A stretch of DNA of 64,000 bases, from NCBI GenBank assembly GCA_000320545.1, contig ADNK01003018.1, positions 1-64,000 on the forward strand, in the 5' to 3' direction. The translations under genes and the position numbers were made by a program. The first letter of the stretch is position 1; each line of letters begins with the position of its first letter. Positions 150 through 59,150 of this stretch are shown here, piece after piece. The notes under the pieces were generated by a model. That model was not told where the DNA came from. It saw only the letters and a list, made by a program, of their open reading frames with translations, and made no database searches. Source of the stretch: Bigelowiella natans CCMP2755. Taxonomy: Eukaryota > Protista > Cercozoa.

Positions 150-1130
150 TCAAGCTAGCCATGCTGATCAGCTAGCATGGGCGATCCATCTGAAAGTTGT
201 GCAAATCATGGAGCTAGGGAGGGAAACCAGCAGAGAAAGCAGTTCTCGTCTTGAGATTTGAAGCTCTTTTCGGAATGAACCCTGACCCTGACCTTTCACT
301 GGCGCGTGAGTGGTCTACTAGCCATTTCGATCGGGCGCTGCAATCAGAGCAGCTCTCACAATGAGAATGGCTGAAATGTGCTTGCTGGCTTGTCGCAGGT
401 GCACACGTGCAAAATTTGCACGCACAGAACACGACCTCTGCATGAGTGAGATCAGTTGGTGCGTGTCCAGATGTGTGGGAATTGACACAAGTCCGTCAAA
501 CCTGCAACGAATCGCCAGAATGTGCGCATTTGGAAGCTTTTGCGCGCGACCAAGCGCGTCATGTGATGCAATGGACATTGGATTTGCTCACATTTCTTTG
601 AAATTTTTCGTGCAGCATGTCACACTTGGTCAAACGCACACGCAAAAGCATTCAAAATGTGGCAGAGAACAAACGCGGGTGTGAATTTTCACACTTTGAG
701 GCCTTGAAAATGGACATTTTGGTCAACATCATTTCGGTCATTTTTTCAGGTTTGGCCATCGGACAAGTTCTGATGACTTTTCTTTGACTGGCTGCAACTG
801 CCTGCTGCTTCAAAGCGCGTCGCAAAGCGCTGCACTGTTCAAAACCCCGTCGTTGCCGGGTTTGACGGACTTGTGGAAGACCATGAAGGAACACCAGAAC
901 ACAAGAAGACACACATGAAGACTTGGTGCACACATGCTCATGCGTTGCACACGCAGGAATGCTAGCATGGGCGCAATGAACAGACACAAACTCTCTTTGG
1001 GAGTTTTCACTTGGTGTGAGCTGCAGCAGCTGGCATGTGATGAACTAGCTGGCTTCGTTGCATCCAGGCATGTGTGACGAGATCTAGAGAAAGGCTATGT
1101 TACACGCTTTTCGCATCACATTTCACATTC
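150..1130. other. Palindrome/RY-rich island A (telomere to P4-ATPase 3' end)
   Basis: GCTAGC at 154, 171, 961 (GCTAGCATGGGCG twice), dense TGCA/CATG/GCGC, no long microsatellites. Confidence 0.6.
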
Positions 1131-1175
1131 ACATTCTGATCAACTGACTATTTGGTGACAGTAACCTAGAGGAAA

Positions 1176-4100
1176 TCAGGAAGACTTTTTTTCGTCATTC
1201 ATGTCAGCAGTGTCAAGAGCCAGAACAGAAGCAGCTTCCTCGGTTGCATCATAGATTGCACCGGTCATGTCGTGCCACCGTAGCAATGTGTTAATAATCC
1301 ATTCCTGCTGGCCACTCATACTCACATCAGATTGCGCACGTTGCTTTGCTTGTCCCAACTTCTCCTTTATCTCCAGTACCTGTTTCTTGTGCTGCTTTTC
1401 TGCTCTTCGCATTTGTCTTGGAGCGAATCTATAAGTCTCTTTTGCCTCTTCTTCCTTGACAAATTTTTTAGACAAAGCTCTTTCTCTCAGTAAATCCACA
1501 TAACTCGGGAAAAACTCAATTTTGACGCCTACGATTGCAAGGTCTACCAGTAAAGGTAAACTGCCTGCAAGAATAGACGTAAGCCAGGCCTGGGGATTTG
1601 CCCACATTGCAAATACGACATAATAAAGATCTGGATTGAATTGGGGACTCAGATTCAGAGCGATAGCGAAGAGGATGAAAACAGCTAGTGAACCCCAGAA
1701 GAAGAAGTGGTGAATCCATGTAATTGATCTCATCTCAAATACAAGACGGAAAGATACAGTGAAGACAGTAATCGTATATATAGTCATACTCGTTAGCCAC
1801 AGGCCATGTACTTGACCGTTAGAGAATGTGACCCCATTGGAATCTAAAGCCCAGAATGCAGTGAAGAAAATGATGGAGGTATGAACTACAGCATTCATAA
1901 TCCAGCGGAAGAAGATCCTTGCTCCAAACAACTGTCCACGAGATATCATGCTGCGGTATGCTTTAGGAGTATTTTCGAGCTCTGCGCGAGGGAGACCTTG
2001 GTCTAGGACAGAAACCACGATGATGGGTAATGCGGTGAAGACAGCATTGTAAAACAAGAAAATCCAAGCATTGAAAAGTTGCTGTCCCGAAAATGCCGAG
2101 AAGAATCCGAAGAAGAACATGATGGTCGCTGCGATTGCAGTCTTATAGAATATATACAGTACCATTATCGAGATGCGTTCATATGACCATGCTCCATGAA
2201 CAAACAACAAGGTATGCAAGTATCGAAATTGACCGAATGCATAATCAGCAGCTTGTGCTGCTGCTGAACCCTCTTCTCCAAAAATTCCAACTCCTACATT
2301 TGCTTTCTTAATCATTGGTTCGTCGTTTCCACCGTCTCCAATTGCAAGTGTAACAGCCCCTGTTCTTTCTCTCATCTCTTCAACAATCCACGCTTTTTGA
2401 CTAGGGGTACAGCGACATGCAATCACAGATTTACATTTGGAAGCTAGCTCGAAGAACTGTTCTTTGAGGGCGAACAATTCGTAGTCTTTCTTGCTCAATT
2501 CTGGAATTTCCTCCTCTTGACACAGTAGAGATTTCACCCACGCAACCATACCCGTCTCCCTTGGTCGGATTTGATCCCTCGAAGGTGCCATGGAGATTTT
2601 ACCTAAAGCACTGTCCTCCCCCCCCCCTTCCACAACCATGGAAACAGGTTCCAAGTCATGATTTATGATAGATTCATATCGTTTTTCTCCAGCCTTGATA
2701 TCCTCCCTAATGGCTTTCATCATAGTAATATCTGTTCCTTGAATGAAGTCGACAAACTCCTTTGACGTAATTTTGCCATCATTACCGGAAAGGGTATCAA
2801 GAAGCTGATGATCTGTTGGAAGTTTCAGATACTTGAGGATCATTTTAAGTTCGCTCAGGGAAACATTCCCGTCGCCATTCTTGTCAATCATTCGAAAAAG
2901 TTTTAAAAGTGCCTTGTTATCGATCTTGAGTTTTGCCCATTTGCCCGTTATCTCAATTAGTCTGTTTTGTGATAGAGCTTCTGCAGAATTTATCCGAAAT
3001 TTATCTAACGCACCCTTTCCAGTGACGTCTTTTGGTTTCTTGAGAGCGATCATATCCGGTTCAATCAGGTTACAAGCCATTCCAATATTCTTAGCGGTCT
3101 CTCGCTTGTCACCAGTAAGCATCCATACTTTGATACCACCTTCGAGTAAGTCTTCAATACATTCAGGTACTAGATGCTGCAGTTGGTCCTCTATAGCAGT
3201 CGCCCCGAGAAGATACATCTCAGATTCAACTTCAATTTTCCTGTACGCTTTCCTTCGTTCTTCTTTGACTATGTTTTTGTCCTCTTTTGATTTGCCCTTA
3301 GGTTGTAGGTCCTTTGCTGCAATGTAATCCCCGCGCCTTTGCTCCCACCAGCTGAAAGGTTTTTTAGCCTCTGCTACTAACAAGGTTCGTAGGCCAAAAT
3401 TGCTAGCTTCCAGTAACTTCGTATTGATATCCTGAGATAGTGATTTTTGCTCTTCTGCAACCTTAGCCTCAGGGGACATTTTGATGAGGGGCTCCACGCA
3501 AGAATCTGCCCCTTTGCACATCAACCAAACCTCCTTACGATCCACATCAGAATAAATCACTGTGACTCTCTTCCTTACACTATCAAAAGGCAATACCGCC
3601 TGAAGACGATACTGCTTTTTTACTTTAGTCCCGAGTTGATCTTCCTCAACGACAACGATTGCAGTACCTTCAGCTCCACTTCGTGCTACAAATTTAAACC
3701 CGATGTGGCGAGCAAAGTTGCACAGCGCTAATTCATCAGGTGAGGAAGAATTGTACACAATTTTGTCGCCATCAGCGACGGGAGTAATAGTGTTAGAAAT
3801 CGCCATATGGGTAAGATAGTTCCGCACAAGCTGTGCTTGCCGTGAATTTTTGGTCTCTGGACTCCACATTGTTTGGATCATTTTCTGTTTCATCTCCTCA
3901 GGGAACGAAATTCCACCTTTCACACCCTTCATTTCTTCTTCGTGCTTTTGGACTCGTTTGGTCCAATTGATTTTAGGCATCTTCATACCACTTTCCTTGG
4001 CTTTGACACGTTTTGAAATATCAGTTTCAGATGATCCATACGCTTCCTTTCCCACAAATCCCAATCGAAACTCCATCTTATTCTGTGTTAGGGTCCCAGT

Positions 4101-5602
4101 TTTGTCAGAAAACACATATTCGATCTGCCCCAAGTCTTCACTTATCTGGCCAAAATTTACTTTTAATGGTCCTCGAACGTCGTCCCACATTTCGACATCC
4201 CTTTCCATGAACAATTGCTGGAACTTTTTCGTCAACTCCGACGTGACAACCAAAGAGATGGGGACAAGCTGCGAGAGGACGATGAACCAAGTGAAGAAGC
4301 GAAGAGTGGCAAGACCAGCAATATTGTCGTCAAGAAACAGATATCCTTCCGCAGCGCCTTTATTATCATCTTGCCAGATTCCCGAGTAGATTGCAGCAAG
4401 GACACACAATCCGATTTGAAGGCCAAGCATGTAGAGTAACAAAGTGTTAACTTTTCGAAATATTGCACTCTTCTTCAATTCAGCTCCATCTTCTTTCTCG
4501 TTGTTTTTGCGAATCTTAGTATCAACACCGACGTACAATACTATACCCAGGATGAACGCCGTGTTTTTCAGCTTGGTTCCTCTCAAGAGCAAATTTCGTT
4601 CGTTCAGTTTTACCGGCTCAGTTTCTTGATTAGGAAGAGTGATACTTATATTTCCTACTAATTTCTCGAGGTCTTTGTCCGGTTCCCCATAAACCACCTT
4701 CCCTTTCAGATCCTTCAAGGGTGCAGATACTTGAGAAACTGCAGAATATATTGCAGCCTTGCGCTTCTGTTCATCTTTCTCGTCGTCCTAGAGGTAGGTG
4801 ATGGAAAACATATTGTTAGATTACAACATCACTCATTTACATAAATGGGGCTTACATTGATCTTCTGATACGGCAAATTAGTATGGATGCTTGAAACTGC
4901 TTCTTTCACTTTTAGATTCGTTTCCCCGTCAAGACTGGCAGTTTCTACAAAGCTATGCCCCTTTGCATGTGCCGTCGCAATGCACAGTATATCGGCAGGA
5001 AACACCTCGTTTTGATTGATCATGATGATGTCACCGCAACATAAATCACCAGAAGGTTTGTAGAAATAATGCGTCGGTGCCTTTGAAACAATGCCATTCT
5101 TTCGTTTTTCTGTCTTCCCAGGACTATTTTTAGCAGTGTGAGGGCAGTAAACCAAGTAAGGTTTTCTGGCTCTGGCAGCGTCCTCTTTATGCTTTGCATA
5201 GTCATCCACAGCAGCTCGGATACCACTGACGGTCAGGATGAAAGAGAGAGGAATGTAGATATCAGGAATACCTTGAGATGCCGATATCGCTGGGACTAGC
5301 TGCAGGATTCCAATGAAGAAAAAGTATACGTTTGAAACCTCATGAAACTGATCCCACAGATTCAAGAAGAGAAAGTTCCACAATGTATACCGGCTGGTGA
5401 CGACAACATTATTCACCATTGGTTCTTCATCTCCATTCTCACTAATGAAACTGTGCCGCTCGCGAGCGACATTTGGGACAGCGATATCGAATTCTCTTCG
5501 CCTAGAAAAAAAATATTAACTCAGCTCCGATGAAAATGGAAACGTGAAATATTCTTCGAACCAGCGCTCCTTGGAGTCGTTATTCTTGGCTGGAAGTAAC
5601 AT
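1176..5602 (-). CDS. P4-type ATPase (phospholipid flippase) with an internal EF-hand pair
   Basis: Motifs DGETNLK, VPISLVVT, DKTGTLT, KGAD, TGDK, GDGGND and C-terminal TM helices. Exons about 5602-5562, 5501-4856 and 4787-1176 joined by in-phase GT-AG introns (e.g. 68-nt intron 4788-4855). Start codon tentative. Confidence 0.95.
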
Positions 5603-6623
5603 ATGAAAGTTAGATCTAATCATGAGATTAAATATTAAACGGTATGAAACATTCTTAGGTTTGTAGGTGTTCTTTTTTCTGCCCTCTCATATTTTTTTTT
5701 TAAATTGACATTAATCTCGGACCGTCAGACATTCTTAGCTGTTAAGTTTCCTATTCCAGCAGAATATTAGAGGAGAGTCTGGCGGGGAGATAGGCCGGTC
5801 TGTGGGCCACGCGGTGGAGAGAGGAAGCTTTGCTCGCAGTATTTATTAACCCGCCCCTTTTCCTCTGAACCTAAGCAAAAAACGCGTGGAAAGGGGAAGA
5901 ATGACCTAAAACCAGCATCTACGAGAGTAATTTAAGCAAAATGTCTTGCATTACGGCTATAAGAGGTCACTATGCCATTCAAACATAAAATATCTTGGAC
6001 TCGTCTTAGTTTTAATGTTGGATAAAATCCTGATAAGAGTGTTCTGCCTTTGTCGTCGCAGTAGTTGCAAGGACATTGCATGAGATCTTACTGGATTGAA
6101 TTCTTAAATTCTTGTAGGTCGTTTTGAAATAAATACAAAGACTTTTCACATCATAGATCTACGAGTATTACCTTTTAAAAAAGGTATGTACTCGGACATT
6201 TGTTTGTTGTTACCGTAAATACCGGTTGGATGAGCTATCCATTTTAATCCCACCCCGGGAGAGTTTATGACTTAAATCTGATTCTATGTTTTTTCATTTT
6301 TCATCACAACCATCTTCAAGAGCAGGATTTATTTGATGAAATCTCCTTAGTTACACCTTTACAGCTGTTTGCTTTTCATATTTCGATTATTTTTCCTGTG
6401 GACGCATTATTTTGTCAAAAAGGTATTCCTTTTTGTGTTGTTTGGGGTAATAATTTGTTGCTTTTGCATCTTAATACATGTACTTTTTGGGAGTTCATCA
6501 TCGGCTCCCTACAAAGGAGAATAGAGGAAGGAGGAAGAAGAAGGGAATAAAGAGACAAAATAGAGAGGAGGGGGGGGGAAGACCCTTCGCGGCACCGCTC
6601 TAGAATCGCATTCACAAATACCG

Positions 6624-8720: not shown

Positions 8721-8754
<34 letters not shown>

Positions 8755-9196
8755 GTTTTTCTTCTGATGAACAATTGGTTTTCTCTGCATGTTTAAAATT
8801 AATAAATGTGCTTTATTCGGCGATAATAACAGCGATGTTGTCGTGACAGAGTGTTGAATTCATCTCGTAACTACAACTGCTACTACTACTACCACTACTA
8901 CTACTACTACTACTGCTATTACTACTACACAAATGATCCAAATATATCCATCGTCGTCTTTTTAAAGCTTACAGCTCAGTGCAAAGAGGGAGGGCAATGC
9001 TTTGGCGTCTTCATAGGAAATCTTCTAATTTATGTCTGGTATTTACCTCGCGTATATACTATGCACACACACACCACATATCTTAACATATATCTATACA
9101 AAGACTGCACACATATCATTATCATATAACAACACTATTTATTGTGAACATTATCATGATCATCATCATCATCATTGAATAATATTCCCATCATCA

Positions 9197-9235
<39 letters not shown>

Positions 9236-9620
9236 GGTGTGCTATATTCCTCCTTGGGATTCCTGAATTAGTGTTAGTTTGGGTCCAATGTGGATGGAAC
9301 CAGGTGCTGCTGCTGCTGCTGCTGTTCTTGCGAGAAGAAGAGAAGACTGCGTGTATTGCAATAACATAATTCATGATAGATGAGGAGAAAGGAATAGACC
9401 ACTTTCACTAGTAATACAACAAATGGTAGTACACTGTTGATCATCATGATATCCTTACTACTACTACTACTACTACTACTACTACCACATCAGGTTGCTT
9501 GGTTATGGGTTGTATGGGTGACATTCTTTATTGCGAGGACTCAAACCGCATGGATCGAGTACCTTCGCTCATCAGCGTGGTACTTTGAACAACACTGAGA
9601 TGATGCTGCAGAGAGAGGGG

Positions 9621-9664
<44 letters not shown>

Positions 9665-10135: not shown

Positions 10136-10169
<34 letters not shown>

Positions 10170-10538: not shown

Positions 10539-10571
<33 letters not shown>

Positions 10572-10881: not shown

Positions 10882-10914
<33 letters not shown>

Positions 10915-12059: not shown

Positions 12060-12096
<37 letters not shown>

Positions 12097-13191: not shown

Positions 13192-13299
13192 TCCGTCAGG
13201 TGTGTCAATTAAATTATTATCTTGTTATGTCCCATTCCTGTATCAATACGAATCATTTTAAATTCTCATAAGTAATGTATATCTCATTTTATTCGTTGT

Positions 13300-14330
13300 T
13301 GACATCGACAATGTACAATGTGTGCCATGCCCGTGCGATGCCACGATGTCGCAACTATTCGTGTTACAGGTGTTGTCGCAAATCATGCACACTGCATGCA
13401 ATCACGTGCATTCCTGGCATCATTGCATCATTGCGCTCTAGCGCTGTGCATGTTGATGATCGATTTTCAGTGGATGTGACATCATTGTGCCGATAGGCTA
13501 GCTCGACGTACATGGTGCATGCCACCATGTCTAGATGTGCATGACTAGATGAGGACAACATGTGTCTCTCTGTGCGTGTAGCTGACACACATTCCTAGCC
13601 CATCTGTGCACCATCTCTAGATCTAGCAGTCATCTAGTCAAGCCATGTGTTGGCATGCACACACCACTGATCACACATGCATGTGTGTTGTTGTGTGCAT
13701 TACATTTCACGTGCTAGCGTGTCACACAGCACATGCAGTCACATAGCGGTGTTGTGTTAGCTGTCCAGTCTGCGTGCTCACGATGTCCAAACACTGGAAC
13801 AATGCACACACACACGGCACGCCCTGCTAGCCTGCGCCGCCCATTGCACCAGTGCGCATGGATTGGGATTACAACACATGCACTGGAAATGAACAACACA
13901 CCTAGCCTAGACACCCATCGATGTCGATCACAACACCCACGCACGTTCACAGACAGACAAGCCATGGCAAGAACGCCAGCAATTGTGCAATGAGGCGGCT
14001 CATCAATGACCCGACCAGCTAGGCTGATACATGCGGCGACAGTTCACAATCAACACGCGAGTGAACGAACGAAGACAAAGTGACGATTGCCAATGGTGCA
14101 TGCAGCTGAGATGCGAGGAGTGAACGAAACGCACAATGCTGGAATGTGCGTTCAACATTGTTGATGCACAGACAACACGCTGTGCTGATGACGTGAAGAT
14201 GGTCCTCAAGCAAGCAACAAGGTGAACTAGCCACGAAGATGCGAGGTGTCAAACTGGCCGAATGCAGGCGAAGCAACCAACTGTCCGCCAAGTGAGAAAA
14301 GGGAACAAGTGGGAGATGATGAACACACGA
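13300..14330. other. Palindrome/RY-rich island B
   Basis: GCTAGC at 13497, 13713, 13826; very dense TGCA/CATG/CTAG. Confidence 0.7.
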
Positions 14331-15324: not shown

Positions 15325-15357
<33 letters not shown>

Positions 15358-16780: not shown

Positions 16781-16811
<31 letters not shown>

Positions 16812-23279: not shown

Positions 23280-23918
23280 GAAAATTTAGAATGCTAGATC
23301 AACATTCTTATCCGTTATTGTAAGCAGATGGCGAGGTCACGACAGTTGTGGGTGATGGACGTTACATCGACGAATATGCAAATGCAGATTTCTATAAAGT
23401 GGAAGGACCTTCACGCAAGGTATTTAGTTTGTGAAATGGATATGGTTATTGTTTAGAGTCAGTAAATGATAACTATTATGTTATGAAGGTGTTGAAATGC
23501 AAGTTAAAATAGTGCTGGGGAGTAGGGACTACAATGATATCCACATGAATGATAACTGATGATACAATTATGTGTACCAAAGTTTGTATCTCTCTCTACT
23601 GCAGCAGCAGCAGCCTTTTTCAAATATTCGTCTTATCATTCTTCCAGCGACTAGTACTATTTTTATCAAATACATCATTCTACTGAGTTTACTACATTAT
23701 CTTTCAAGGTGTCACTGTCAGGTCCCAATGGAATTGCAGTTGGCCCTGATAATAGCTTATATATTGCTGATACGGGGGCTAGGCGAATAATAAAAGTAAT
23801 AGTGTGTTGAAACGAAAGGGCACACATGCAAATATCATTTCGTCTTTACGTTTAGAATCCTCCATAACCATCGTGTAAATAACTATAGGTGGTCCCTAAT
23901 GATGCTGGCTGGGTATAA
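14830..23918 (+). CDS. NHL-repeat (beta-propeller) protein
   Basis: Spliced repeats YPNGITVDSKG-YIYVCDGYNYVVRRIS, FRHPIDAVSDSRGQIYIAD, SGMAIDHSNNIYLSDIGNNVVRRIS, GPNGIAVGPDNSLYIADTGARRIIK; stop TAA 23916-23918; 5' end uncertain. Confidence 0.85.
16286..16452 (+). repeat. Tandem duplication, about 90 bp unit
   Basis: TAATGGATAGCGTGAGTAGCGCATATATACGA..ACAATACCAATAACAACAACAAC twice. Confidence 0.9.
22436..22570 (+). repeat. Intronic tandem duplication, about 67 bp unit
   Basis: CTTTTTGATGTTATAATAACAGAAACATACACACTAGCTACTACTTATATTGATACTACTAC twice. Confidence 0.9.
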
Positions 23919-24009: not shown

Positions 24010-25170
24010 TTGCCCCACTACTAGCTCGAAATCAATCGTCTAGCATTTTCCACGATGAGGCAATATAGAGCAAGAATGTGGCGACATTGCCGCATATCAC
24101 ATTTTATCTAGGTATCATAACATCTACTAGACTTTGAAACAAACTTCCTTGCGCTACTGGGAAAGTCCATCTACGTATTATATCTTGCCTTTTTCTGGCA
24201 TCAGCTCACTGGCACGAGTACGTATCTCTGTATCCAAGCATGATCGATGCGTGACAGTATCCAGATGCTATGTGCACATTGCGTTGTTCATGCTGAGTAC
24301 GGCCATGCTAGCATGTTTCAATACTTTTATGAGACCTTTGGCGATACGATCCACTGTAGGGTAAGCCGAGTAACATGCAGTCAACCAAATGGTTGGAAAC
24401 TCCTGCTGCTGATCGAATGATGTCACATGCGATGCAGTCAACCAAATACAATGGTTGGACCCCCCTACTGCTGCTGAATGTGGACGGCGTGTGTTGTAGC
24501 TAGCTTTATTTGCACAGCGTAGCAACTACATCAGGATGACCACATCGGTGGGATTTGTAAGACAGGCGTAATGAATCAAATTAAATTTGTTCAATGGTCA
24601 TCCTCATATCTAGATATGTAGCTGTGCAATGCAACGGCTTTCTAGCTTTATTTTGGAGCATTCATTTGATTCATTGCTACACATCGATCCGTCTGATACG
24701 CTGAATGCAAATCTAGAAATGCCCAATATGTAAGTACTAGCTAGTGCAATTGAAAATTTGAAATTCGCATGTACGTGACTACCGCTTACGCAACAAAACC
24801 ACGGCGATTCACGTGCCATGATGCGTGCTATATGCTAGCTAGTATCAATAAGAATGCATGATCGAGAGTATTGTCGTCCCGTGCGTACATGCATCATGCA
24901 AGAATAAACAGCTTATTCGACAAAACATGAACAGCAATGCTTGTGTCGGTCGTATCGCTGTGTAGTTTTACACGCTGGAACAACAGGTCGCACCGCGTTG
25001 TGATCATGGCGACGCAAAGATCCGAGGATGTGAAGAATATCGATGCATAGCAATCGCTCTTCCAGCATATACAATGATCCACTACTAGATTGAATGAATG
25101 TACAGTTGAAATGGAACATGTGCTATTTTGAGTGTGCCTATTAGCATAGTCCCCACGAAATGACATATGA
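24010..25170. other. Palindrome/RY-rich island C (NHL / kinase convergent gap)
   Basis: CATGCTAGCATG at about 24304, AGCTAGCT, ATGCAT runs. Confidence 0.7.
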
Positions 25171-25371
25171 GTAACTTCAAAATATACGCTCTATAATGTA
25201 GAGTGTGGAGAAATAACACCACCACACCCTGCATTTTTTTACATTCTATTGGTAGAATCTAACTAAAGGTTATTTGATGTTATCCGGTTTCGATTGATTT
25301 TCTTCAAATTTTGCAACTGATTTACATTCTAAATAGAGTGATAACAAACAAGAGTAACAAGCAAGATTTAA

Positions 25372-26558
25372 TTACAACCCTTTGAAGGAGAACACCCGTT
25401 TTTGAGACAAATTGTTATCGTATTCTTCGATAACCACCTTTCGCATGCCATTTGTTCTTGGAGTAGAAAGCTTTCTTGATCCCCACCCTAAATTCAATGC
25501 ATTAGTCTGTCGTAAGGACAACAATACCATCATTTTCTCCCAGTCGTCTCTTTAATCTTAAGGATGATATGTGATAATACAACCTACTGTGCGTGGTGTA
25601 ACCACTTCAAGTCCGCCACTTGAGAATCCCGATGTTGGGGATTTCCATCTTCTCCTAGGTACTACGGCACTACCTACAATTATTCAATCACCTCTTTACT
25701 ACCCAGCAGCAGCAGTAGTAGTAGTAGTAGCAGTAGTTGTAGTTGTAGTAGTTGTAGTAGTAGAGCGATCAACTCATAATAAGAACACTTGCTGCTGTTG
25801 CTGCTGCTCTCTCCCCCCTCCCCCCTCTCTCCTATTATTTGCCGTATATTTTCTGCATCCAACAGGAAGAGATAATATTCTTCTTCTTCTTCTTCTTCTT
25901 ATTATTATTATTCTACGAGAACCAACTACTTCTACTACTACTATCGTCATCCTCCTGCACCAAAAAAGATGAATAAGCTATTCTAGAGTGAGCCACTAGT
26001 ACTATCATCAAACATCATTATAATTATATTATCACTCTACTACTACTCCTACTACCTCCTGTTGGTGACCGACGATGTTGTGATGATACTACTCTTCGAT
26101 GAGAACCAGGTCTAGGAGAACTACCGATTATTACCTAAGGGGGGAAGAGGAAGAAGAGGAGACAATTACTCGGTATATAAATACTACTCGCCACAAATGA
26201 TATTCATGAATCATCATCAAGTAATGGTTCTTGTCTATCAAGAAGGCATATATACACCACCACCAATCTTGGTCGTCATTATGACTATCGTATTATCTGG
26301 GTTCTTGAGTACTTTTTGTTGATATTATATTATATTACGTGGTTGTTCTTTTTTGATATTTTTGAGTAAAGTCCCCTCCTATTGACAAGCCTTGCAAGTG
26401 AGTCTTCCCCCCCCCCCGCTATTGCGCCAACATCTTGCACATGGGGATGAAGTCTTGCATGTGGTGACGTGTTAATCCTTGGGGTTGCTAATCCAGCAGC
26501 AGCAGCAGCAGCGCGTTGATTGGAGGAGTAATTTGTTGTATCGGAGCGACCGCGTACA

Positions 26559-26591
<33 letters not shown>

Positions 26592-27579
26592 GGTCGTAAC
26601 TTAGAAACTCGCATCTTAGCCAATCTGAGGAAGGAGTTAGTAGTGGTTATGGTGCTAGTAGTGTTATTGTTCAAAATAATAACAACTACGATATATAAAC
26701 TATTACGCTGGGAATTCATTCAAAATATGCACTGAATAGCTGCCCAAAACAGCAGCGTTTTCTCCATCCATGTGACCCCTTCTAACCCTATCATTATTGT
26801 TTTGACCCTCCTCCTCCTCCTCCTCCTCCTCCTCCTCCTCCTGAAGTTCTTACTTTGTATCAGCATCCCGATGGCATTCCTCCTTGAGCTTTGCTACCTC
26901 TGAAAACGTCATCTTCCTTTTTGTGTCGTTCTTGCATAAGAAGGAAGAGAGAATGGAATCAGCAGCAGCAGCAGCAGCATGAAGTACAACTCATATGTAT
27001 ACAAAATAAACAGGGTTACTACTACTGTGATTCTTTACTACCTCTTCTCCCCCTCCTCCCAAGTACTCAGTCATCATTGCCCACGAATGATTTTGAATGC
27101 TTTCTAGAGGAAGTCGGTCTAAAGACTTCACTTCAAGCATACCTAAGACACACCGTTATTGTTCACATCATCATCATATCGATCGTCACCACCAACACCA
27201 CCACCACCAACAACAACAACAACACATTTAAGAACAAGAAAAGAAGATAGAAAAAATTAAGCTTGAAGAAAGGTCCTTCTGAGAACGAGAGTAAGTAATA
27301 GCTCTATTTTAGTGGTAATAATACTTCGAATTAGGTCCGTAAGTCCCTTTGAGAGAAAAGATGGTATCGTAAAGAAACCGTTGCAAACCTGAATTATTGT
27401 CATTGTTGTAAGAGTCATCATTACGGTTATTATCATCAACCCCATCATCTTTATTTACAGAAAACGATACTAATATTTTGCGTGAGAACAATTAGATCTA
27501 TTTGCAATGTAATGATGAAGATTACTCATCATGTTTCTGCAAAGTAGAAGCGGTAGACGACACTCAGTATTAACAGCAA

Positions 27580-27621
<42 letters not shown>

Positions 27622-29362
27622 ATCTCTATTCCTCCTCCCATGATCATCTTTATCATCATCACCCTTCAACGTTATCGTATACTACTGTACCTTCTGTGAT
27701 AGATTTTGCAGATTTTTTGCTGCAAATGGTAAAAAGCCGCAAACCATTGCATACAGTACAACCTGTAGCAGCAAATTAATATACAATAAGCATTGATTGA
27801 TTAATCAATAAGTGAATCATTAATCCTGAAGTCAATTAGTTATTCTCTTCTTCTTCCTCCTCCTCCTTCTCCTCACTTACCCCTAAGCTCCACACGTCGG
27901 TTGATCCATCATACTTTTGCCCTCTCATCAGCTCTGGTGACATATAAAGAGGAGTGCCACAAACAGATTCTAACTTCGCGTCGCCCAACAAACGCTCACT
28001 TAAACCGAAATCTACGATCTTGATGTTTCCTGGACAAATTAATTAAAAAGACAAACAAGTGATGTGTATTTGGTGCTGATAACAGCCAACATATATAACC
28101 ATATTATAGACATGATCGATCATTACGAGACAATGATCTTTCTCTTCTTCTAAACCATTTCCCTTTGTTTTGTAGTACCCACCTTCAGAATCGAGAAGTA
28201 TATTCTCTAGCTTGAGATCCCGATGTATTACCTACAAAAAACAAACAGACAGACAAACAGACAAACGGACAAATACACGTCAAAAAGGAAGGAAGGAGGG
28301 AAGGAGAGGGTGAGGGAGGATGGCAAAAGAAGAACAGAAGCAAACGCCTTTTATTATATGAGTCGCGTGTGTGCCCAAACAACAACAATAACAATATAAA
28401 CAACAACGATAGCAACCGTGTGCAAGTCAAGCATACTCACGACATCGTAGTATAACAACTATGTATTTTTAATAACTTTTTCTATGAGTGGTAGTACACT
28501 GTGACACCATTGTACCACTATTGCTACCACTACTATTAGAGCTTTCTATCAGTGTATAATGTGTTATTATTATTGGTAGTAGTAGTAGTAGGCTGCTGGA
28601 GATGTATCAGTATCAAATTTTGATTATGAATAATATCCTCAAACTCTAACTCTAAATTCTAATAATCGAGTTGATCGATTTTCTGTTAATATGTGTTGCT
28701 CCTACTACTACTACTACTACTACTACCTTTAACCTATGGCAATAAACCAACCCGTCCAATATTTGGGAGAATAGCCTTCAAAATCATCATTTTGTAACAG
28801 TAACATAAATAACATGAGACAGAAAACAACGACAACAACAACAACTACTACTACTACTACTACTACATCTGTTCCTCCTCTGCAAAGGAAGTGTCGTATT
28901 ATCATTATCATCATTATCATCATCATCTCTTTCAACCTCGAGGCATGGCTTTCGGAAAGATAAAGGTGCTTTTCTATCAGCTTCGATAACTCTCCTCCCT
29001 CTGCATACTCCATAACCTGAGGACAGTAACAACCAACGTCGAGAAAATAGCGGGAGATATCATAGATGTTTGTTTTATGATCATACTATAGAAAAGCTTT
29101 GCTTGATGCAGTACATTAAAGATTTACATATACTATTACCAGTCACTACTTATTCCTACTATTACCACCACCACCACCACCACCACTGACAGCTTTTCTG
29201 TATTGCTCTGCTGCTACTACTACTACTACTACTACAACTACCAGGATAATGTTGTTGTATTGGTTCACCACGTCATACAGCTGGATCACGTTCTTCAAAC
29301 ACAAAAATCAAAATGCAACTAAGTATTATGTTGTAAAGCAATGGGTCTGTGTATGTGTGTGC

Positions 29363-29421
<59 letters not shown>

Positions 29422-32158
29422 GTATATCTACTATGATTCCAAGTGTTGTTGAGCGCCCTGGTATGTAGTTTGTAGAGTACAAACAGCAGCACCAATGAAA
29501 AACTACCGACTGTGCTAATTTCAGTGCATTCTCTCTCTCTCTCTAACGCTCCTTCCCAAGGATATGAATCGAGCTAGACTCTCGCAGTGATGGATATGTA
29601 GAATAAAGTCATCATCATTTACTTTGTGGCGAAGGGATGTCAAAATGAACATTTCTCCAAATATCTGATTCACCTGATGATACAATATGGTCATGGAACA
29701 TCAAAGAATAAACACAAATTCCAAGGAAGGTGAGGCCAAGCAATTGTGATATGGGAGAGGAATATATCCATATTCTGAACGCGCACAACATACTACGGAC
29801 ATAGCACACATTTGTTCAAATAGCAAAAACACAAACCATTGAAAAAATGATGAAGAAGCAAAGATGACATGTCCTACCCATTAGTAAGTACAAATGAAGG
29901 AAATAATCACATCGTACAATCAATACACCCACCCTTTTAAGATCATCGATGCCTTTCTTTTCCATGATTTTGATGACAAGTCCTTGCCCGCCACTGACTC
30001 GTCGCGCAAACTACCAACATGACGCGTTATCGTTAGATATCAACCCCCATCCATGAATCATCTATCGTGTGTATTATCAGATTGGTATCTACATCATCAT
30101 CGACTAATTGCTGGAGGTAGTGGTATGGTAGAATATACAATAACAGATTGAGTACTACCTTTACTTTTCCAAATGCTCCTTCCCCAATAGTTCTTCCGAC
30201 GTTGTACCCTTTCACGTGAATTCTTGGAGATGATACTCGGCGGGCACTACTACTTTTGATGATCAGCAATAATAATGGAGATGGAAAAGAAGAAGGACAG
30301 GGAAAAATAAAAAGTAGTTGAAGTGAATGATGAAAGACAGACCATGATAGTGTATGATACGACATCAACAACAATTACTAAGACACATTTTTATAATGCT
30401 GGCAACTGGAATAGGTATCTCTGAATCATCATCATCATCGTATTCCCCAAAATAATCCTTGATCTTCCTTCTATATCTTACGTATTCTTGATCTCTCCTC
30501 GCTCTCTTTTCGACGTTGAATACACGGAGGTAAGCAAGGATCTTAAAATAAGCAGAGCAGCAGCAGCAGCAGCAGCAGGAGGAGGAGGAGGAGTAGCAGA
30601 CACGGAGCGAGAATGATGAGCTCAGTTGGATCATCATCAATTGTCACCACAAAAGAAGGGCATAATTTAGTTTGAGGTAAATCATCCTTCATTTAGCATA
30701 GTCAAAGCCAGAGGAATAAAATTTAGGAGGAGGAGGAGGAGGAGGAGGAGGAGGAAAGATATATGGCAGAGAGAAGAAGGGAGAAACAGAGAGAGACAGA
30801 GAGACAGAGAGAGAGATAGTTGCTATGACAGAGAGAGACAGAGAGACAGAGAGAGATAGTTGCTATGACTTTGGTTGATCCTGTTGATCCTGCGAGCACC
30901 CCGTTGATGGTATTGTTGTTGTCCTACTACTACTCAAAGTGCTACTCCTCCTCCGTGTTCCACGTGTAGATGATGATGATGGCCTTGGAGAAGGCTGCTG
31001 CGTTGTGGAGACCGTAGTACCAGTAGTAGTAGTAGTAGCAGTACCAGTAGCAGTAGCACCGGCAGTGGTCGCAGCATTGATCGTACTACTACTACTACTA
31101 CTACTAGTAGTAGTAGTAGTGATGGCAGTAGTACCAACAGCAGCTACGCTACTACCAGATCGTATTGCTGCTTCTGCTGTCCCTGAATCAAGTTCTTTTG
31201 ATGATGAAAAAGTTTTCTCACCAAGAGTCCGAACAGATCGAGGAGATGGAGTATGTGGTAACATTGGTTCCGCCTAAGTGTCATTAAGAGATATTCAATA
31301 ATGTGCTAACATTGAGACATGCAAAAACTCACGGAGTTACATCATTATATATCATCTTGGTTTTAACACCTTCACTCCCCGCAGTATTGAGCCTGACAAC
31401 GGACGCAACAGATCTATGCTGCTTATGCATCCTGAAGACCGTACTTTTGTTATGCCTGACGCTGGTGTTTCAACAAGAAGATGATGATCTCTCGGCTGCG
31501 ATTTGTTAATTCTCGGAAGCTCAAATGGAGAAGCGCTGTATATTCAAACAAGTCACATGAAGAAATCGCATGTAAGCTATGTATTCGGCCTCATTATATA
31601 TTATAGATATTTTGTTCTTTGGGAACAAATTGTTTGAAGACCATTCGTGACTGTAAGCTACAGATTTGTTGTTAAAATTGTACGTAAATCTACATACATA
31701 CTCTCCCTCTTTCACACACACACACACGCACGCACACACATAAACATAAACATCTCCGTGGAAATAAACTTACAATTTATGAGTCGCAGTTTACAACATA
31801 ATATCTAGCTATATAAATACACGTATATTGTTGTTTTTGTTGTGATAATTTATATGTGTTTACGTTCGAGACGAATTCCGATAGTGCTGATCCCTTCGAT
31901 GGCTCATGTCTCTTCTGAGCTTTAGATAGATATATTGAAAAAAAAGAATTAAAAAGATGTTTGATGAGAAGCTGCTATTCACATCGAAATGTAGAGCCCA
32001 CACATAATTTTCGAAGCGGTACGTAATAATGCTACTCGAGATAGAAAGAGATTTCATCAACAACCTCCTATTTTCCGGATCCTTCTCCTTTTGTTTGTTC
32101 TTCTTCTTAATCTAGTCTTTTGTTTTCCTGCTGCTGCTTTGTGAGAAGCAGAAGCCAT
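25372..32158 (-). CDS. SNF1/AMPK/MARK-related (CAMKL) Ser/Thr protein kinase
   Basis: Exons give GRTIGEGAFGKVK, MEYAEGGEL, IHRDLKLENILLD, IKIVDFGLS, CGTPLYMSPE, DVWSLG, LYAMVCGFLPF. In-phase 5' exons from ATG 32158 (MASASHK..); low-complexity N- and C-terminal extensions; stop position tentative. Confidence 0.9.
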
Positions 32159-33699: not shown

Positions 33700-34520
33700 A
33701 ATTATACAAGATGGATGCGCATGCTACTACCGTGCAGAAGTTAACTCGAATAACACGTACCATTTCCCCCCTTATCCCTTCTTTCACTTTCAGTAACATC
33801 CACTGCTACCGTGCTAGCGTGGTTCCAATAGTCGCCACTCCTTGTGCATGCACAAATCCAAAACATGATTAAGCAACTGCGCATCGCACGCTCGCTCCCT
33901 GTATTGGTCATGCATGCCATGTGTTTTACTAATATTATGCACTGCGAGATGTGTCACAACTGCAGTCTCTCATCTGATCCGCTCGTGGATGGAAGGTTGA
34001 ATAGGAGCAGCAACTTCGCGCAAAGAATCGAACGATTTTCAAACAACGCGCTTGCCTGCGGATCGTGCTTGTGCTAGCATAACGCATCGCATTAGCAAGA
34101 GCATGCATGCACGCGAAGCTGCAGTGCTGCAGTACATTACATCGCTGCGTGCATGCTAGCATGCTGCGAACAATGCGAAGATCGTCCTGCTATGTACAGT
34201 TGTGCGACACGAGCGTATAGCTTTATGATAGACACAGTATAACGCCAGGAATTCCTGTCAATATTATAATTCTTTGACGCCAATGTTGCACATCTGTACA
34301 TGCATACCTAGCTAGCTAGACGTACATTCTAGTGCACGATTTGGTAGATCAAGTGGACATAGGCTGGCGGGACAAGTGACGAGATCTCTCAACCTTTCGT
34401 CTGCTTGTGATCATCCGCTCAACAACCTACCTCATCATCCTTGAATAACTCGATCTAGTTTCCACCACATGATGATCATGTGTGCAAATGATCTCAAATG
34501 CATGCAAAACTTACACATTT
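33700..34520. other. Palindrome/RY-rich island D (SDHAF2 / glycosyltransferase convergent gap)
   Basis: GCTAGC at 33813, 34073, 34155; GCATGCTAGCATGC; CTAGCTAGCTAG. Confidence 0.7.
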
Positions 34521-34647: not shown

Positions 34648-37520
34648 CTAGCAAAGGAATTGTGTAGGTGTTAATACGCTTTCAGGGTTATCCCAACCCG
34701 CGGGCTCTTCATTTGCACAACAATTTCCTGGACTTGGGTTGACCAAGGTAAGAAGACCGTTTACATTGTGTAGGTACTTCTTATGCATTTCGATGTTCCA
34801 TTTAAGTTCATGCTCCATGTAATACTGATATGCCCTCCAAGGCTCCTTCACAAAACGACCTACTTGAACAATCCCGTAGTGCAACATGTCATGATATCCA
34901 GAGTTGTGCCCGTAAGTCCAGCCCGTGAAGTGGAATGTTGCGTTTTTATTGAGGAAAAACTGAACTGTTGAGGATTGTAAGATGAGATCATTCCATCGAT
35001 TGGTGAATATCTTGCCAGATTCATCCACATAATTCAGAAAATTTTGAACGTCAGGCTGCAAGAATCTCTCAATATCAGCTACAAAGAAATTGTTGTAGAA
35101 ACCGAACTGCTCTCCACAGTTCTCCCGTGTTAAATCATCTACACTTTCCTTGCTTTCACACAAATCAAGATACCATCCAGTTGTTCCTTCCATATGCTTT
35201 TTACTATAATTTCTTAAGTACGCCGAGTAGTCATCAGGCTTAGGCCATATAAGACCCGTCTCTCTCGCTATGTTACGATAACCATAGCCTATTCCATAAT
35301 GTTCCATGAAGCCGAAGAGGTTGTAAGGAATCTCGCTAAGTAAGTAGGAGTCATCATCGAAACGAGAGACCCATCTGTATCCTAGTTTTTTCATCATAGG
35401 CCATATTCGAACAGCATACAGTCTCATCATTTTCCTGTATCCCATGCCTTCTACACCTGCCCAGTGTTTTCGAGATTCCATGACTTTAGCAGGAGGATCC
35501 TTCCAATCTTCACCCTTCAAATGGTGGAACTTGATCTCAGGACGCCCAGCGATAACAGCTTTCTGAGCTTCGGCATCAAAATCTCCCTCGTGCATAACGA
35601 TGACATCATCGTGTTCACGATCATTATAGTGTTTGAACAACAGTCGCAAAGTATTATTGAGAATCTCCATTCCTGGTCGTCCGTAAGTTTGATGTTTTTT
35701 ATTTTGTGCTAATATCACAAATGCTCCTTTTCCTACAAAAATAATAAATAAGAATATACAAGTACGTAAGAAGAGAATGGAGGAGGACAACAACATAATT
35801 ATAACAAACTAGGATGACTACTACGCATATCATATTAATAAATAGAGTAGAATCTAGCACCTGTTTTAGGTTTTCCGATTTTCAACTTCTTCGCTTCTGC
35901 CTCTTTTGCAAACTCCGCGTTGACATGAGGACAGCACGTAGTGTCCCCAAGTTTGCCCCCACCGTAGTCTGGAAGCGGATCCGTATTACTACATTTGCCC
36001 TCTGATGTGGCCAGACTGTAGGTGTTGGGATCTGCGAATAACATCTTTCTCTTCTCGTCGGCTGATTCTAGATCTGTTATCTCACCATAAGCAGGCAATT
36101 CAGGGAAGTCACCACTGCGGAAGTACACACCGAACTCTGATACCGCAGACCAACACTTGACAAGGCTGTCTGTTTGAGCTAGCATGAGAGAATCCATCAA
36201 TACATCTTGGCACTTCTGATCTTTGGATACAGAATCATTGTAGAGAACGTTCGCATCCTGTCTGTTTGCCTCCAGCACTCCTGTATTATTCAAATATAAG
36301 TCACACAATCACGCATCATCAGTTTCTATCTCACCGCTACTGATTACTACTACTACTAATACTAATACTTCACAAGGCGTTGAATGAATTTATATTTCTT
36401 GTAGAAATTACCAAGGACATCAGGGAATTCTTGCTTCATATCAGAGAGGTAGTTCTTATCATCTGTCGCTAAGAAGACTCTTGAATTCGGGCCGTTGAGC
36501 TGAACGTGTTCAGTGGCAAGTCTAATGTATGATTCAGGGTCTACACGGCCATGCACAAATTTATCCGTTCCACGCATGTGGAGACCAAGAATGGGCTTAT
36601 TTACTTCTCTATTAAACAACTGTGAGTACTTTGACTTAGCCATGTCAAGGAAAGATTTCTTGGCGTGAATGTATTCTTTGACGATCTTTGTTGCCTTCTT
36701 GCGGTTGTTATCCAGCCACGTGTTTCCACATTCCCATTCACTATCACCAGGATATGGATATGCATGTGTAGCGTTTTTGTCATAGAAGGAGCTCATCAAG
36801 GAGTCTTGTGTGAGTTCCCATACATCCGCATCTTTGACACTTTTAGGATCAACACTAGAGATTGGTTCGAAGTATTTATGCCAGAAATCAGCAGAACTCT
36901 GTCCACCCTTAGCCGTATCGTTGATGCATGAGTGATAGTGATGAGACTCGGGCATGTAAACAAATGGTGCCTTATCTCCAATTAGGCCCTCCCTCACAGC
37001 AAATTCGAGTTGATTGAGCACCATGTACGGGAACGTGAAGAACCCGCAACCCATCATAAACTTATAGTTGGCTCTGATACGAAAATGCTTGCTCCTGAGC
37101 ATAGGCCTTAGCTTGTCAAGGTTCGACCCTACCTTAGTGCTTTCAAATCCTTTGAAACTGAAGTTAAAAGCTTGTGTATCTGCGACATCTAGGCTGTAGC
37201 AGTCTCCGGAGGCTTGGCATGGTGCCTTAAAATCACAAGATTCTTGTGTTACCATGTCTGCAAGGCCACATTCACCAATACTTCGGCATCCTTTTGAATT
37301 GCACACTTTCGTTGGATCTTCCTTCTCAAAGAGACGTGGAGTAATAGAATATTGCTTGTATTCACGGGTGTCGAAAAGCCACGCCTTCATCATGAAGTTG
37401 TTGTACCTTAATAAGTGATTTTAGGTTAGACGTAAGTCGAAGGGGCCGCTACATTGATTATTTAATCAGACGAATGACGACGACTGTGCTTCTCTCCATG
37501 CAGGAAGAATGCCATTATTC

Positions 37521-55527: not shown

Positions 55528-56223
55528 CCCCCCGCCCCCCCCCTCCTTCTGTGTTGTGTTGTGTGATATACTACATATTATTGTCACTGTGTAAATATCC
55601 AGAGATTTACTTGCCGATGCCAGCGCAATATGTTCGGTTTTACCTCAAGGCACCGAGGTATTATCGATCGATCGGTCGTCGTGACCTAATGTTTATTTTC
55701 TTATGCTATTATTAAGTTGTTGAACCGCTGTATATCCCTCCATCTCCATTTTTTGTCTATATATTCTTCTTCTTAGGGACGGCAGTTGGAAATTGTGAGG
55801 AGAGAGATAAGACTTATGCGGCTTCAGGTAGCCAACTCTTAGTAGTGTGGTAGTAGTAGTAGTCGTAGTAGTAGTAGTCGTAGTAGTAGTAGTCGTAGTA
55901 GTAGTAGTAGTAGTCGTGCTGCTGCTACTGCTGTTGCTGCGAAAGCATGATCAAATACTTTATTATTTCATTTATAATTATTAGAACCAGCAAGCATTGC
56001 GGGAGCAAGTAAGAGCAAGCAGAGGAAGAGGTGGAGGAGGAGGAAGTAACGGTGCAGCAGCAGCCAGACGTGGAGCGAGGAGGGACGGACTTAACCCGTC
56101 GTCGCCCTTCTTCCAGTACACTTTACCTCTTACAGCAAAATGGATGGTCATAATGATGGTAGTAAAACTTATTTTAGTTGTGTTGTTATGAGTACCAATA
56201 GGTGGTTGTTTGTTGTGGCAATC

Positions 56224-56259
<36 letters not shown>

Positions 56260-56345
56260 TTGGAAGTACCAGTAGCAGCAGCAGAAACTAATGGAAGAAG
56301 AAGATGATAGTAATGATGATGCCATAAGTTCATACCTACACTCTC

Positions 56346-56384
<39 letters not shown>

Positions 56385-56900
56385 CCTCTCCCTCTATCGT
56401 GAATAATGAATCCTAAAAGGTTTTTACGGTGTGGAGCTTGGTAGATACAAATGCAGTTTCGTATCTTAAATTAGACTGGAACAAAGGTGATAAGTAGTAG
56501 AGATTATATCAGTGATGCGTGAAACACATCGTCAGCATCGTCATTATCATCATCACTACTCATCACCAACAACTGTTATAATGATATTCATATTTGTTCT
56601 TCTATTTCAGTGAGCGAGGGAGAATTTTGGAGGCTGGGCACGACTTTTTTCTCGCTGGGAAACCGATCCAACTTGCTGTAATTATAATCATTAGAAGACC
56701 AATTTCATGTTTTCCCCTGCTCGAACAAATCGTATTATTATTATATCATGTAATAATAATAATCATAATAATAATGATAATATCTCAGGCGATCTGTATT
56801 TTCGCTCTTGCGTTTGTACTTTCTCAAACCTTATGAGCCGACGATTGGAACAAAGAGGTAGGTAGGGTAGGCACTACTACTACTTTCATATATCATCACC

Positions 56901-56933
<33 letters not shown>

Positions 56934-57996
56934 TCATGGCCTCCCTCTCCTTTCACCGATTTACAAAATAATACTAGATACGGTAAAATTCTGGTTTCTG
57001 GCGTTATTATCATGCTCATGTGGAGTTATATGAATCAAGCAACAGCCGTCAAACAGCAGCAGCAGCAGCAGCAGCAGCAGGTCGAGTGAATTGGTAGAAG
57101 GAAGCAGTAATAGTAGTAGTAGGAGGAGGAGTAGGAGTATGATGAATACAGCAGCAAGAAGAAGAAGAGGAAGAAGAAGAAGAAGATCTATATGATCGTC
57201 TGCATCACAATTAACCGTAGTTTTCTCCCTCCCTGTGTAGGATCATGAATTAGACGATTCAGATTTCCTTTCACATTGGCTAATCTGGCACATGTTTGTC
57301 TATTACTGCCTTGAGGTAATATATTTCATTTGTTCGATCTGAGGGGGGGGATGGGGGATGTTTCCACAACCATTCATTACACAAACGGAATGATTTTACA
57401 ATCTTATTGCTCTATTGGTTGTTATTTATTGATATACCATAATAACTTGACACTATCATCATCATCATTATCATGATCATCATTCAGAAACCGCTTCTGT
57501 TTTTGGTATTGCTATGGCTTGTACAATTGGAGGCCATCGTCCAAGCACCGTAAGATCATGATGATGATGATGATGATGATGATGTGTACTACACATATGA
57601 TGAGCCCTACATCACCATAATCATCATCATTGTCATCATCACATCGGTCATCTTAGAATCAATATTGTTGGTCTATGTTATGATCAATAAATATTTCCCA
57701 GATGGCAAAATCTCACCATGTTCCTGATGATGCTCTCTCCTAGGATTCCATACATTGCGGTATCATCTTTGATAGAATGCTTAATTTGCAATAATGATTA
57801 TTTCGGCTGCTGCTGCAACATGGAGTATCGTTCACTGCCGCCTTAATTTAAATTTAATCCTGTCGAAAACAACAACTTTTATGATTTTGTTCTACAGATA
57901 ACTCTCTATAAAAATCTCAACAATTACATGTTCAACGAAGAGCAACGGCATGAAGAACTATTTCATATCAGAACTCGAGTTGTGTTGCGTGGTTGA
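54420..57996 (+). CDS. N-terminal C3HC4 RING E3 ligase fused to a Derlin/rhomboid-like membrane domain
   Basis: CPVC..PVTLKCGHSLCEDC..KCPA|GC RING; downstream exons YLKLDWNK|VSEGEFWRLGTTFFSLG, LYFLKPYEPTIGTKRY and several TM segments; stop TGA 57994-57996. Confidence 0.75.
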
Positions 57997-58069
57997 AATC
58001 TGATAGTATAGACAATGGTCATTTTAATAATAATAGAGAATATAAATTCGGACGTATGTGTATATATCC

Positions 58070-59150
58070 GTTGCAACACGTGTCGCTTTACTTGCATGAA
58101 ACATTACATTGACAAGCTAATTTTCGATCACCACCAAAACAAACCTGCACACGATCGCGGGCGATGCAATCGCAGTCGCGGACTCAAATCTGGTTATCAT
58201 CATCTGCGCACTGCTAGACTGGGCCTCGCAATGATGGTTATTATTATTTCATACACAGCGACGAGCATGACGCTCTAGACGCTACCTTCGGTTTGATGCG
58301 CGCACATTCTAGCATTGCTGCGCATGCTGTAGCGCACAACTGTGCAGTGGCGGTCCATGCAGAGACAATAAGACGATGCAAGTTGTTGAGCGCTGTCGTA
58401 GCCGCTGCATTGCATAGCTACATGTGAGGATATGACCATTGAACGAATTTGATTGATCAGTTGCATCCGTCTTGTGCATGCTAGCATGCTAGCATGCATA
58501 CTAGCATAGCTACATGGCATCACGAAGCCATCGCCGCATGATCGCACATCTAGACATGACCACTTGGCGCTAGATGGCAGTAGCCACAACAGGCTAGCAG
58601 GCTGGCGCAGGCTGTGCAGCGCTTTTCCATGCTCACCTTTCCATCTAGCTAGCCATGCAGCGTCGTGCAGTCAGAAGGAAACCCATCTAGACATTGCATG
58701 CTAGCATGGTTAAGCCAAGCTAGTAAGCTAGCACCGTGTTTTTCCGCAACAACAATATGTGCCACGGCATCGGCATCATACCTACACTATGACACAAATG
58801 GCGTGCAGTGATAGGGTAGCGCAGGTGCAACACATTGCGCGCACAGCTGTGTGTCAATAATGCGCACGCTTTGCATGATGTGACACATGTGGCGCAGCAA
58901 GCAAACCCGCTCTAGCGCTTGATGACGAACATGTCTAGATATATGGACATATATGCAAGCTACGATGCGTAAGACAAAGGCAATAAATAAGCTCATGCAT
59001 AGTACTAGGATGTAGTACGTTACATCGTAGACAAGACGAGGGCGTGGTGGAACACACAGTTGATAATAACACATAATAAGCATCACGTTCTCCAAGAGAA
59101 AGTAAGCCACACAAACATCCACGATTTAGGTGTTGATTGTGCCAGAACAT
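58070..59150. other. Palindrome/RY-rich island G (RING-Derlin / C2-PDZ convergent gap)
   Basis: Perfect 24-bp palindrome TGCATGCTAGCATGCTAGCATGCA at 58475-58498, many GCTAGC. Confidence 0.7.

Follow-up and report, generated by a model that had tools for sequence, protein, structure and literature searches.

Islands at converging gene ends of Bigelowiella natans: probably a mutational palimpsest of CTAG scars, TpA hypermutation, and LINE debris

The first 64,000 nucleotides of contig ADNK01003018.1 of Bigelowiella natans CCMP2755 (assembly GCA_000320545.1), hereafter the window, start at a chromosome end, as read from the telomere repeats (TAACCC)n at 1–95, and contain seven blocks ("islands") rich in the words CTAG, GCTAGC, CATG, TGCA, and GCGC and in TG/CA alternation. 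The original prediction, made from the sequence, took these islands for terminator or chromatin-boundary domains of RNA polymerase II, carrying a modified base or a bound protein, or else for the mutational footprint of such a mark. Our analysis indicates that they are probably transcriptionally silent DNA between converging poly(A) sites, or between the last gene and the telomere, and that their vocabulary is a mutational palimpsest and not a code.

Results

Layout and transcription of the islands

The islands together make up 9.4% of the window length. They were scored by the sum of CTAG, CATG, TGCA, and GCGC ("core words"), counted in 500-bp and 250-bp bins along the contig, with the contig remainder (15 kb past the window) added to the contig-level counts. 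Island 1 (150–1130; 44.9 core words per kb) runs from the telomere to the 3′ end of a minus-strand flippase gene, the open reading frame (ORF) of which stops at 1176 and which has a PhoLip_ATPase_N match at 4895–5494 (−). Island 2 (13300–14330; 56.3 core words per kb), listed as the one with the strongest TpA erasure, may be the case that the original prediction had placed behind a tandem gene. To the left of island 3 (24010–25170; 35.3 core words per kb) is a plus-strand NHL-repeat gene (exon 23655–23807 (+), E = 3e-5), while island 4 (33700–34520; 52.4 core words per kb) abuts the 3′ end of a minus-strand glycosyltransferase gene (ORF 34648–35796 (−), stop at 34648). Island 7 (58070–59150; 67.5 core words per kb), which has the most insertion scars of the kind described below, has a PDZ exon to its right (60839–60976 (−)). 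The NHL and PDZ exons are both short and isolated, and the introns of the host genes are full of trinucleotide repeats.

Islands 5 (46560–47180) and 6 (51485–51780) occupy convergent gaps, as shown by RNA. Mapping over 46200–52100 (5,901 letters) drew on a single raw RNA run, a single run of transcript contigs, and two DNA runs, the last two being identical to the window sequence. At island 5, a plus-strand transcript tails off at 46645–46790 and RNA depth is zero from 46791 to 46987, with a minus-strand gene of six CT..AC introns ending on the right at about 47164. Island 6 takes up the interval between two poly(A) sites: on its left, a plus-strand gene with a GT..AG intron at 50727–50852 ends at about 51508; on its right, minus-strand poly(A) sites are recognizable at 51779 and 51798 from loose poly(T) ends; and RNA depth is zero from 51519 to 51715. 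Both islands are untranscribed DNA between converging poly(A) sites, and the RNA assigns island 6 to the convergent class. The four mapped transcript ends showed no common poly(A) signal.

The predicted position of the islands behind the 3′ ends of RNA polymerase II genes is therefore borne out by RNA on both sides of islands 5 and 6, and on one side, by a Pfam-supported exon or a long ORF, for islands 1, 3, 4, and 7. Two other routes to strand assignment were set aside. Codon-usage strand maps were too noisy, with intron trinucleotide repeats mimicking ORFs, and served as hints only, and intron-end motifs were unhelpful, GT..AG alone being conserved. Head-to-head gaps are free of islands, as had been predicted: core words number 7–22 per kb in five such gaps, and the gap at 49548–49959 holds no island. 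The same is true of the U6 small nuclear RNA gene (53406–53517 (+), Rfam 94.8 bits), which sits in a head-to-head gap of island-free composition.

Word content of the islands

In 500-bp bins, the peaks of core words coincide with the seven named blocks (16–41 per bin vs. 2–9 elsewhere). Density is 34–68 per kb in the islands against 10.6 in the rest of the contig, and in 250-bp bins the difference between islands and others has a Mann–Whitney p of 3e-16, with no outside bin reaching island level. Microsatellites take up 0–3% of the islands and 10% of the sequence elsewhere. Alignment of the islands with one another and with the contig found nothing in common except a 61-bp piece of a long interspersed nuclear element (LINE) in islands 3 and 7. 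The original prediction was thus right about the enrichment, about the missing trinucleotide microsatellites, and about the lack of long mutual homology.

Its emphasis on palindromic words holds in part. CTAG is the sole word-level excess in the islands, at 1.48 times the second-order Markov expectation, whereas GCGC, TGCA, and CATG stand at 1.0–1.1 times theirs. Perfect palindromes of at least 8 bp are no richer per kb in the islands than in the remaining contig, and palindromes were ruled out as structural elements on that ground. The vocabulary is mostly compositional and sits at the dinucleotide level, with odds of 1.57 for CA/TG, 1.52 for GC, and 0.58 for CC/GG. Purine–pyrimidine alternation (0.588 in the islands vs. 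0.497) is carried by many short mixed runs of 6–12 bp, none of which is a pure dinucleotide repeat. An eighth island of like kind lies beyond the window at contig 72.5–74.0 kb; coding hints at 72500–74000 are plus-strand on its left and minus-strand on its right. The recurrence of islands every 9–13 kb is what the spacing of gene pairs would be expected to give.

The CTAG insertion scar

Beyond composition, CTAG occurs in a stereotyped frame. We call NNNN-CTAG-NNNN with identical 4-mers a perfect scar, that is, an 8-bp insertion made up of CTAG and a 4-bp target duplication. The window has 25 perfect scars where about 0.7 are expected by chance, and all 25 lie within islands: one in island 1 (210–221), six in island 2 (starts 13434, 13527, 13541, 13613, 13710, and 13823), four in island 3 (24304, 24606, 24638, and 24709), three in island 4 (33810, 34152, and 34308), one each in island 5 (46676–46687) and island 6 (51751–51762), and nine in island 7 (58210, 58305, 58477, 58485, 58497, 58546, 58590, 58697, and 58908), where 58477–58496 reads as an array, CATG-CTAG-CATG-CTAG-CATG. 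The eighth island adds five. Among the 215 CTAG of the contig, the flanks match perfectly in 31 and with one mismatch in 19, against about 0.7 and 8 predicted for random flanks. The sole perfect match outside the islands, AAAA-CTAG-AAAA at contig 70004–70015, is in A-rich DNA and may be due to chance.

The pattern extends over the genome. A 168-kb sample (the contig plus 29 loci) contains 117–125 perfect scars, or 19% of all its CTAG, and among other fillers of 0–12 bp between identical 4-mers in that sample none stands out. Word counts over the 91.4-Mb assembly give 3828 copies of CATG-CTAG-CATG (single unit CATGCTAGCATG) against 7 for the reversed control, and 868 + 865 copies of ACAT-CTAG-ACAT against 2–8 for reversed controls. 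With CATG and ACAT making up 15% and 5.6% of the targets in sampled scars, scaling from these two types leads to an estimate of 25,000–31,000 perfect scars genome-wide. A minor form, CATG-CTAGCTAG-CATG, has 76 copies vs. 0 for its control. A metagenome scan for the double scar returned 22 unrelated contigs in which only the queried 20-mer was present, with no other scars, and nothing relevant on a 4-bp duplication with a CTAG footprint was found in the literature searched.

The logo of the target (n = 125 scars) is palindromic, M-W-W-K between a flanking c on the left and g on the right, with CATG as the commonest target. TGCA is as abundant as CATG in the islands, yet it is never a scar target. 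The preference puts a G before and a C after the insert, which is why GCTAGC is frequent. Copies of the LINE family described in the next section show directly what has been inserted: three of them (L024, L030, and L025) have 8 bp more than the family consensus, in CGCT-CTAG-CGCT, CATT-CTAG-CATT, and AGAT-CTAG-AGAT, so that CTAG was added and 4 bp duplicated.

LINE stumps

A genome search with 58389–58474 (+) of island 7 revealed a dispersed family (44 scored matches of 459 candidates), the copies of which end sharply in the same 3′ sequence, …CATCCGTCTT(A/G)CA, and differ in how far they reach on the 5′ side. A further 3′-end fragment lies reversed in island 3 at 24579–24639 (−), with 77% identity over 61 bp to 58400–58454. 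The ORF of a longer copy is 45% identical to a 1319-aa protein (P0002) with Exo_endo_phos_2 and RVT_1 domains. Searched against Pfam, PHROGs, and PDB, the ORF fragment gave no match, and the family is assigned via this full-length relative. Judged from these comparisons, the stumps are 5′-truncated ends of a LINE with an APE-type endonuclease.

LINE copies in the islands bear both scars and TpA editing, and one 900-bp copy, nearly free of TA (TpA odds 0.03), has 46 core words per kb, the level of an island. Another copy (L005), a truncated one, lies between two 10-bp direct repeats of the sequence ACATGCTAGC, in which there is also a CTAG; a target duplication this much longer than the 4 bp of the scar argues against the LINE endonuclease as the maker of the scar. 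In mutation-accumulation lines of B. natans, 7 of 13 new insertions end in …ACA (such as +GACA, +CAACA, and +CATTACA), and TGGC became AACA in one multinucleotide change (Supplementary Table S2 of Mettrop et al., 2026, preprint, 10.64898/2026.01.13.699255), while the island LINE likewise ends in …CTTACA. These insertions may be extremely 5′-truncated LINE insertions, which would imply an active process.

TpA hypermutation

In the mutation-accumulation lines, the same preprint describes hypermutation that is solely from TpA to TpG or CpA and affects integrated viral DNA that is transcriptionally silent, together with genome-wide clusters of TpA-poor, CpA+TpG-rich windows, and a baseline bias in the opposite direction (GC-to-AT over AT-to-GC = 2.65) (10.64898/2026.01.13.699255). 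A text search of it found neither "CTAG" nor "tail-to-tail," and its lone "convergent" refers to convergent evolution.

Two sets of copies show the same kind of change. In CATG-type scars genome-wide, the decayed centers CTGG and CCAG number 508 and 505, compared with 224 for the four transversion forms together (mean 56) and with 62 and 65 for outer C-to-T and G-to-A changes, so that, within the same 12-mers, the rate of TpA transitions is about 8 times that of ordinary C-to-T changes. In 30 LINE copies, A has undergone a transition in 20.9% of cases when it follows T, and T in 14.6% of cases when it precedes A, against 0.7–4.8% in other A/T contexts and 4.4–6.7% at C/G positions. Single TpA sites are found as TA, TG, and CA across copies, and TA is therefore ancestral. 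Editing depends on context, with TA in GTAG or CTAC changed in 7–10% of cases vs. 37–57% after A or T; CTAG is by this measure a poor substrate, though edited and not immune.

Most of the TA that survives in islands 1 and 2 sits in CTAG: island 1 has TpA odds of 0.16, with 7 of its 10 surviving TA inside CTAG, and island 2 has TpA odds of 0.41 (0.18 without CTAG) and CA+TG odds of 1.95. These two of the eight islands pass both published cut-offs, for TpA and for CpA/TpG, and CA+TG odds are 1.41–1.95 in all eight, but five have TpA odds of 0.73–1.13. CATG, TGCA, CACG, and TG/CA runs abound because TpA editing erases TA and makes words rich in CA and TG; from TATA, for instance, it would yield CATG, TGCA, CACA, or TGTG. 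Editing TpA in silico in ordinary noncoding or exon DNA reproduced the rise in CA/TG, CATG, TGCA, and G+C. According to PMC12730881, simple repeats of [AT]n are widespread in the related alga Amorphochlora and "largely absent" from B. natans, which destruction by TpA editing would fit.

Discussion

Most of the vocabulary of the islands is explained by three mutational layers. In the first, a stereotyped insertion at palindromic targets gives X-CTAG-X and with it CTAG and GCTAGC; in the second, the change of TpA to TpG or CpA erases TA and also decays the scars to CTGG or CCAG; and in the third, 5′-truncated LINE copies are lodged in the islands and bear both kinds of damage. The two mutators would act only on untranscribed, probably heterochromatic DNA, and the sparing of microsatellite-filled introns and head-to-head promoters would follow from such a restriction to silent chromatin. 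Since both avoid the adjacent transcribed introns, a distinct silent chromatin state is implied, and a heterochromatin state marked by H3K9me3+H3K27me3 is present in B. natans on transposable elements and repressed genes (bioRxiv 2025.03.17.643675). The fallback of the original prediction, a mutational footprint, was thus right in kind, in the form of TpA editing, scars, and LINE debris, but the footprint is not that of a termination mark.

Several observations weigh against this account. TpA odds are near normal (0.73–1.13) in five of the eight islands, so the editing is uneven. In-silico editing fails to produce the GpC odds of 1.5, the CC/GG odds of 0.58, the alternation of 0.59, GCGC, and the raised CpG. 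Excising the recognizable scars (5% of island DNA) leaves the signature unchanged, so that scars still recognizable as such are not what produces the CATG/TGCA/GCGC and alternation pattern. The RNA silence comes from islands 5 and 6, and flank orientation was read on both sides for two islands only. None of the 21 indels that arose over 3,132 generations of mutation accumulation is a CTAG scar, a zero that is still compatible with ongoing activity, as a rough estimate of the rate predicts about 1–2. Finally, a search for elements with CTAG termini and inverted repeats or 4-bp duplications found nothing above chance in the 168 kb (0.2% of the genome); the genome as a whole has 15 DDE_Tnp_4 matches. 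The GpC excess, the CC/GG deficit, and the alternation are only partly explained by the known layers. Older decayed scars, an editing preference for TAC to TGC, and sequence derived from transposable elements possibly contribute to what is left, as may a weak editing of CpA to CpG, a change seen in 4.6% of cases in the LINE copies vs. roughly 2% in other contexts.

That the islands are functional terminator or chromatin-boundary domains, where a modified base or a bound protein stops RNA polymerase II between converging genes, appears improbable to us. Their placement would suit such a role well, as they lie exactly between poly(A) sites, are without RNA, and are absent from head-to-head gaps, but any DNA between two poly(A) sites would have the same position. 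Likewise, the confinement of the mutators to the spacers implies a distinct chromatin state, and an H3K9me3+H3K27me3 state of heterochromatin exists in B. natans. The sequence itself speaks against constraint: the islands have no common motif or alignment, their vocabulary is compositional, and hypermutation, 8-bp scars, and LINE stumps overwrite the sequence. Nothing in this picture of turnover and junk insertion with no conserved motif supports a terminator coded in the sequence, a modified base, or a bound protein, while a role of the islands in termination or insulation at the level of chromatin is possible. Base J, which marks convergent strand-switch regions and telomeres of kinetoplastids, resembles the islands in position only, between converging units and next to a telomere. 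B. natans is a rhizarian with ordinary monocistronic genes, and mutation explains the signature. Decay of a single repeat or satellite family lodged in the gaps can be dismissed as highly improbable, for although a LINE 3′ fragment is common to two islands, beyond that piece of 61–85 bp the islands align neither mutually nor with the rest of the contig, and only 85 bp of the 1081-bp island 7 match genomic repeats.

Within the account of silent, mutated spacers, the origin of the scar is a question of its own. We tentatively favor, at somewhat less than even confidence, a footprint left on excision by a cut-and-paste element that is present in few copies, ends in CTAG, and duplicates 4 bp of its target. 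Its departure would expose self-complementary CTAG overhangs that are then religated, and the CTAGCTAG form would be a filled-in variant of the excision site. The hallmark of a footprint, a direct target duplication around a constant remnant, is present in 125 perfect copies of X-CTAG-X in the 168 kb. The canonical footprint of Tc1/mariner or Sleeping Beauty elements is likewise a target duplication with a few fixed terminal nucleotides left behind. Duplication, fixed remnant, and a palindromic target preference, the last expected of a dimeric transposase, are common to both. The scar differs from known footprints in that the 4-bp duplication is at no fixed sequence and the CTAG remnant is uniform, with tens of thousands of copies in one genomic compartment and a donor not found in 168 kb. 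Topoisomerase-II-type duplications, abortive LINE insertion, and hairpin P-nucleotides were rejected as sources, since the filler never varies, has a fixed length of 4 bp, and does not depend on the flanks.

The extreme uniformity of the scars, at 25,000–31,000 perfect copies by scaling, their occurrence in the compartment that is also hypermutated, including the inside of LINE copies, and the lack of a donor in the 168 kb would suit a host-encoded nuclease or integrase that is aimed at silent chromatin, cuts with a 4-bp stagger, and seals with CTAG, with no transposon departing. We consider this unlikely. An element that moves by conservative cut-and-paste can produce footprints in numbers far above its own copy number, the minor form with CTAGCTAG fits filled-in overhangs at an excision site just as well, and scar density in LINE sequence is not above that of the surrounding island DNA (about 1 vs. 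4 per kb). To our knowledge, there is no candidate enzyme for writing such a scar directly. If it were host-written, the scar would be a second arm of genome defense beside TpA editing, as an insertion of 8 bp is frame-shifting and CTAG supplies a TAG on either strand. A host system and a deaminase-like TpA mutator that both recognize silent chromatin would then form a two-armed mutagenic genome defense with no described counterpart, an idea that we regard as doubtful.

For the editing layer, repeat-induced point mutation in Neurospora offers a parallel: each process hypermutates silent or repeated DNA by transitions in a particular sequence context and leaves a diagnostic dinucleotide skew. 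The fungal process turns C into T, for the most part at CpA, so that the DNA becomes AT-rich, whereas island editing converts A:T to G:C at TpA and makes the DNA GC-richer. Much closer is the hypermutation of viral DNA in the same species, with change from TpA to TpG or CpA only, silent DNA as the substrate, and the same TpA loss with CpA+TpG gain (10.64898/2026.01.13.699255). The targets reported there are a 186-kb insert of a giant virus (nucleocytoplasmic large DNA virus), a 25-kb virophage insert, and 124 clusters of 1-kb windows, whereas the islands are gaps of 0.3–1.5 kb, unevenly edited, in which TA within CTAG is a poor but not immune substrate.

The analysis contributes the RNA mapping of two islands, the genome-wide decay spectrum of the scar, by which CTAG is edited but at a slower pace, the palindromic target logo, and the finding that recognizable scars leave the word and alternation signature unaccounted for. 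No description of a uniform 8-bp CTAG scar in tens of thousands of copies was found in the literature searched. The islands are also a cautionary case: mutation alone, without a code, can give rise to a conspicuous class of sequence whose placement follows gene orientation. TpA hypermutation appears to reach well past viral inserts, into thousands of short spacers at gene ends. The spacers between convergent genes of B. natans are a natural record of two unusual DNA-altering activities, and because neighboring introns are spared by both, these spacers must differ from them in chromatin or transcription state.

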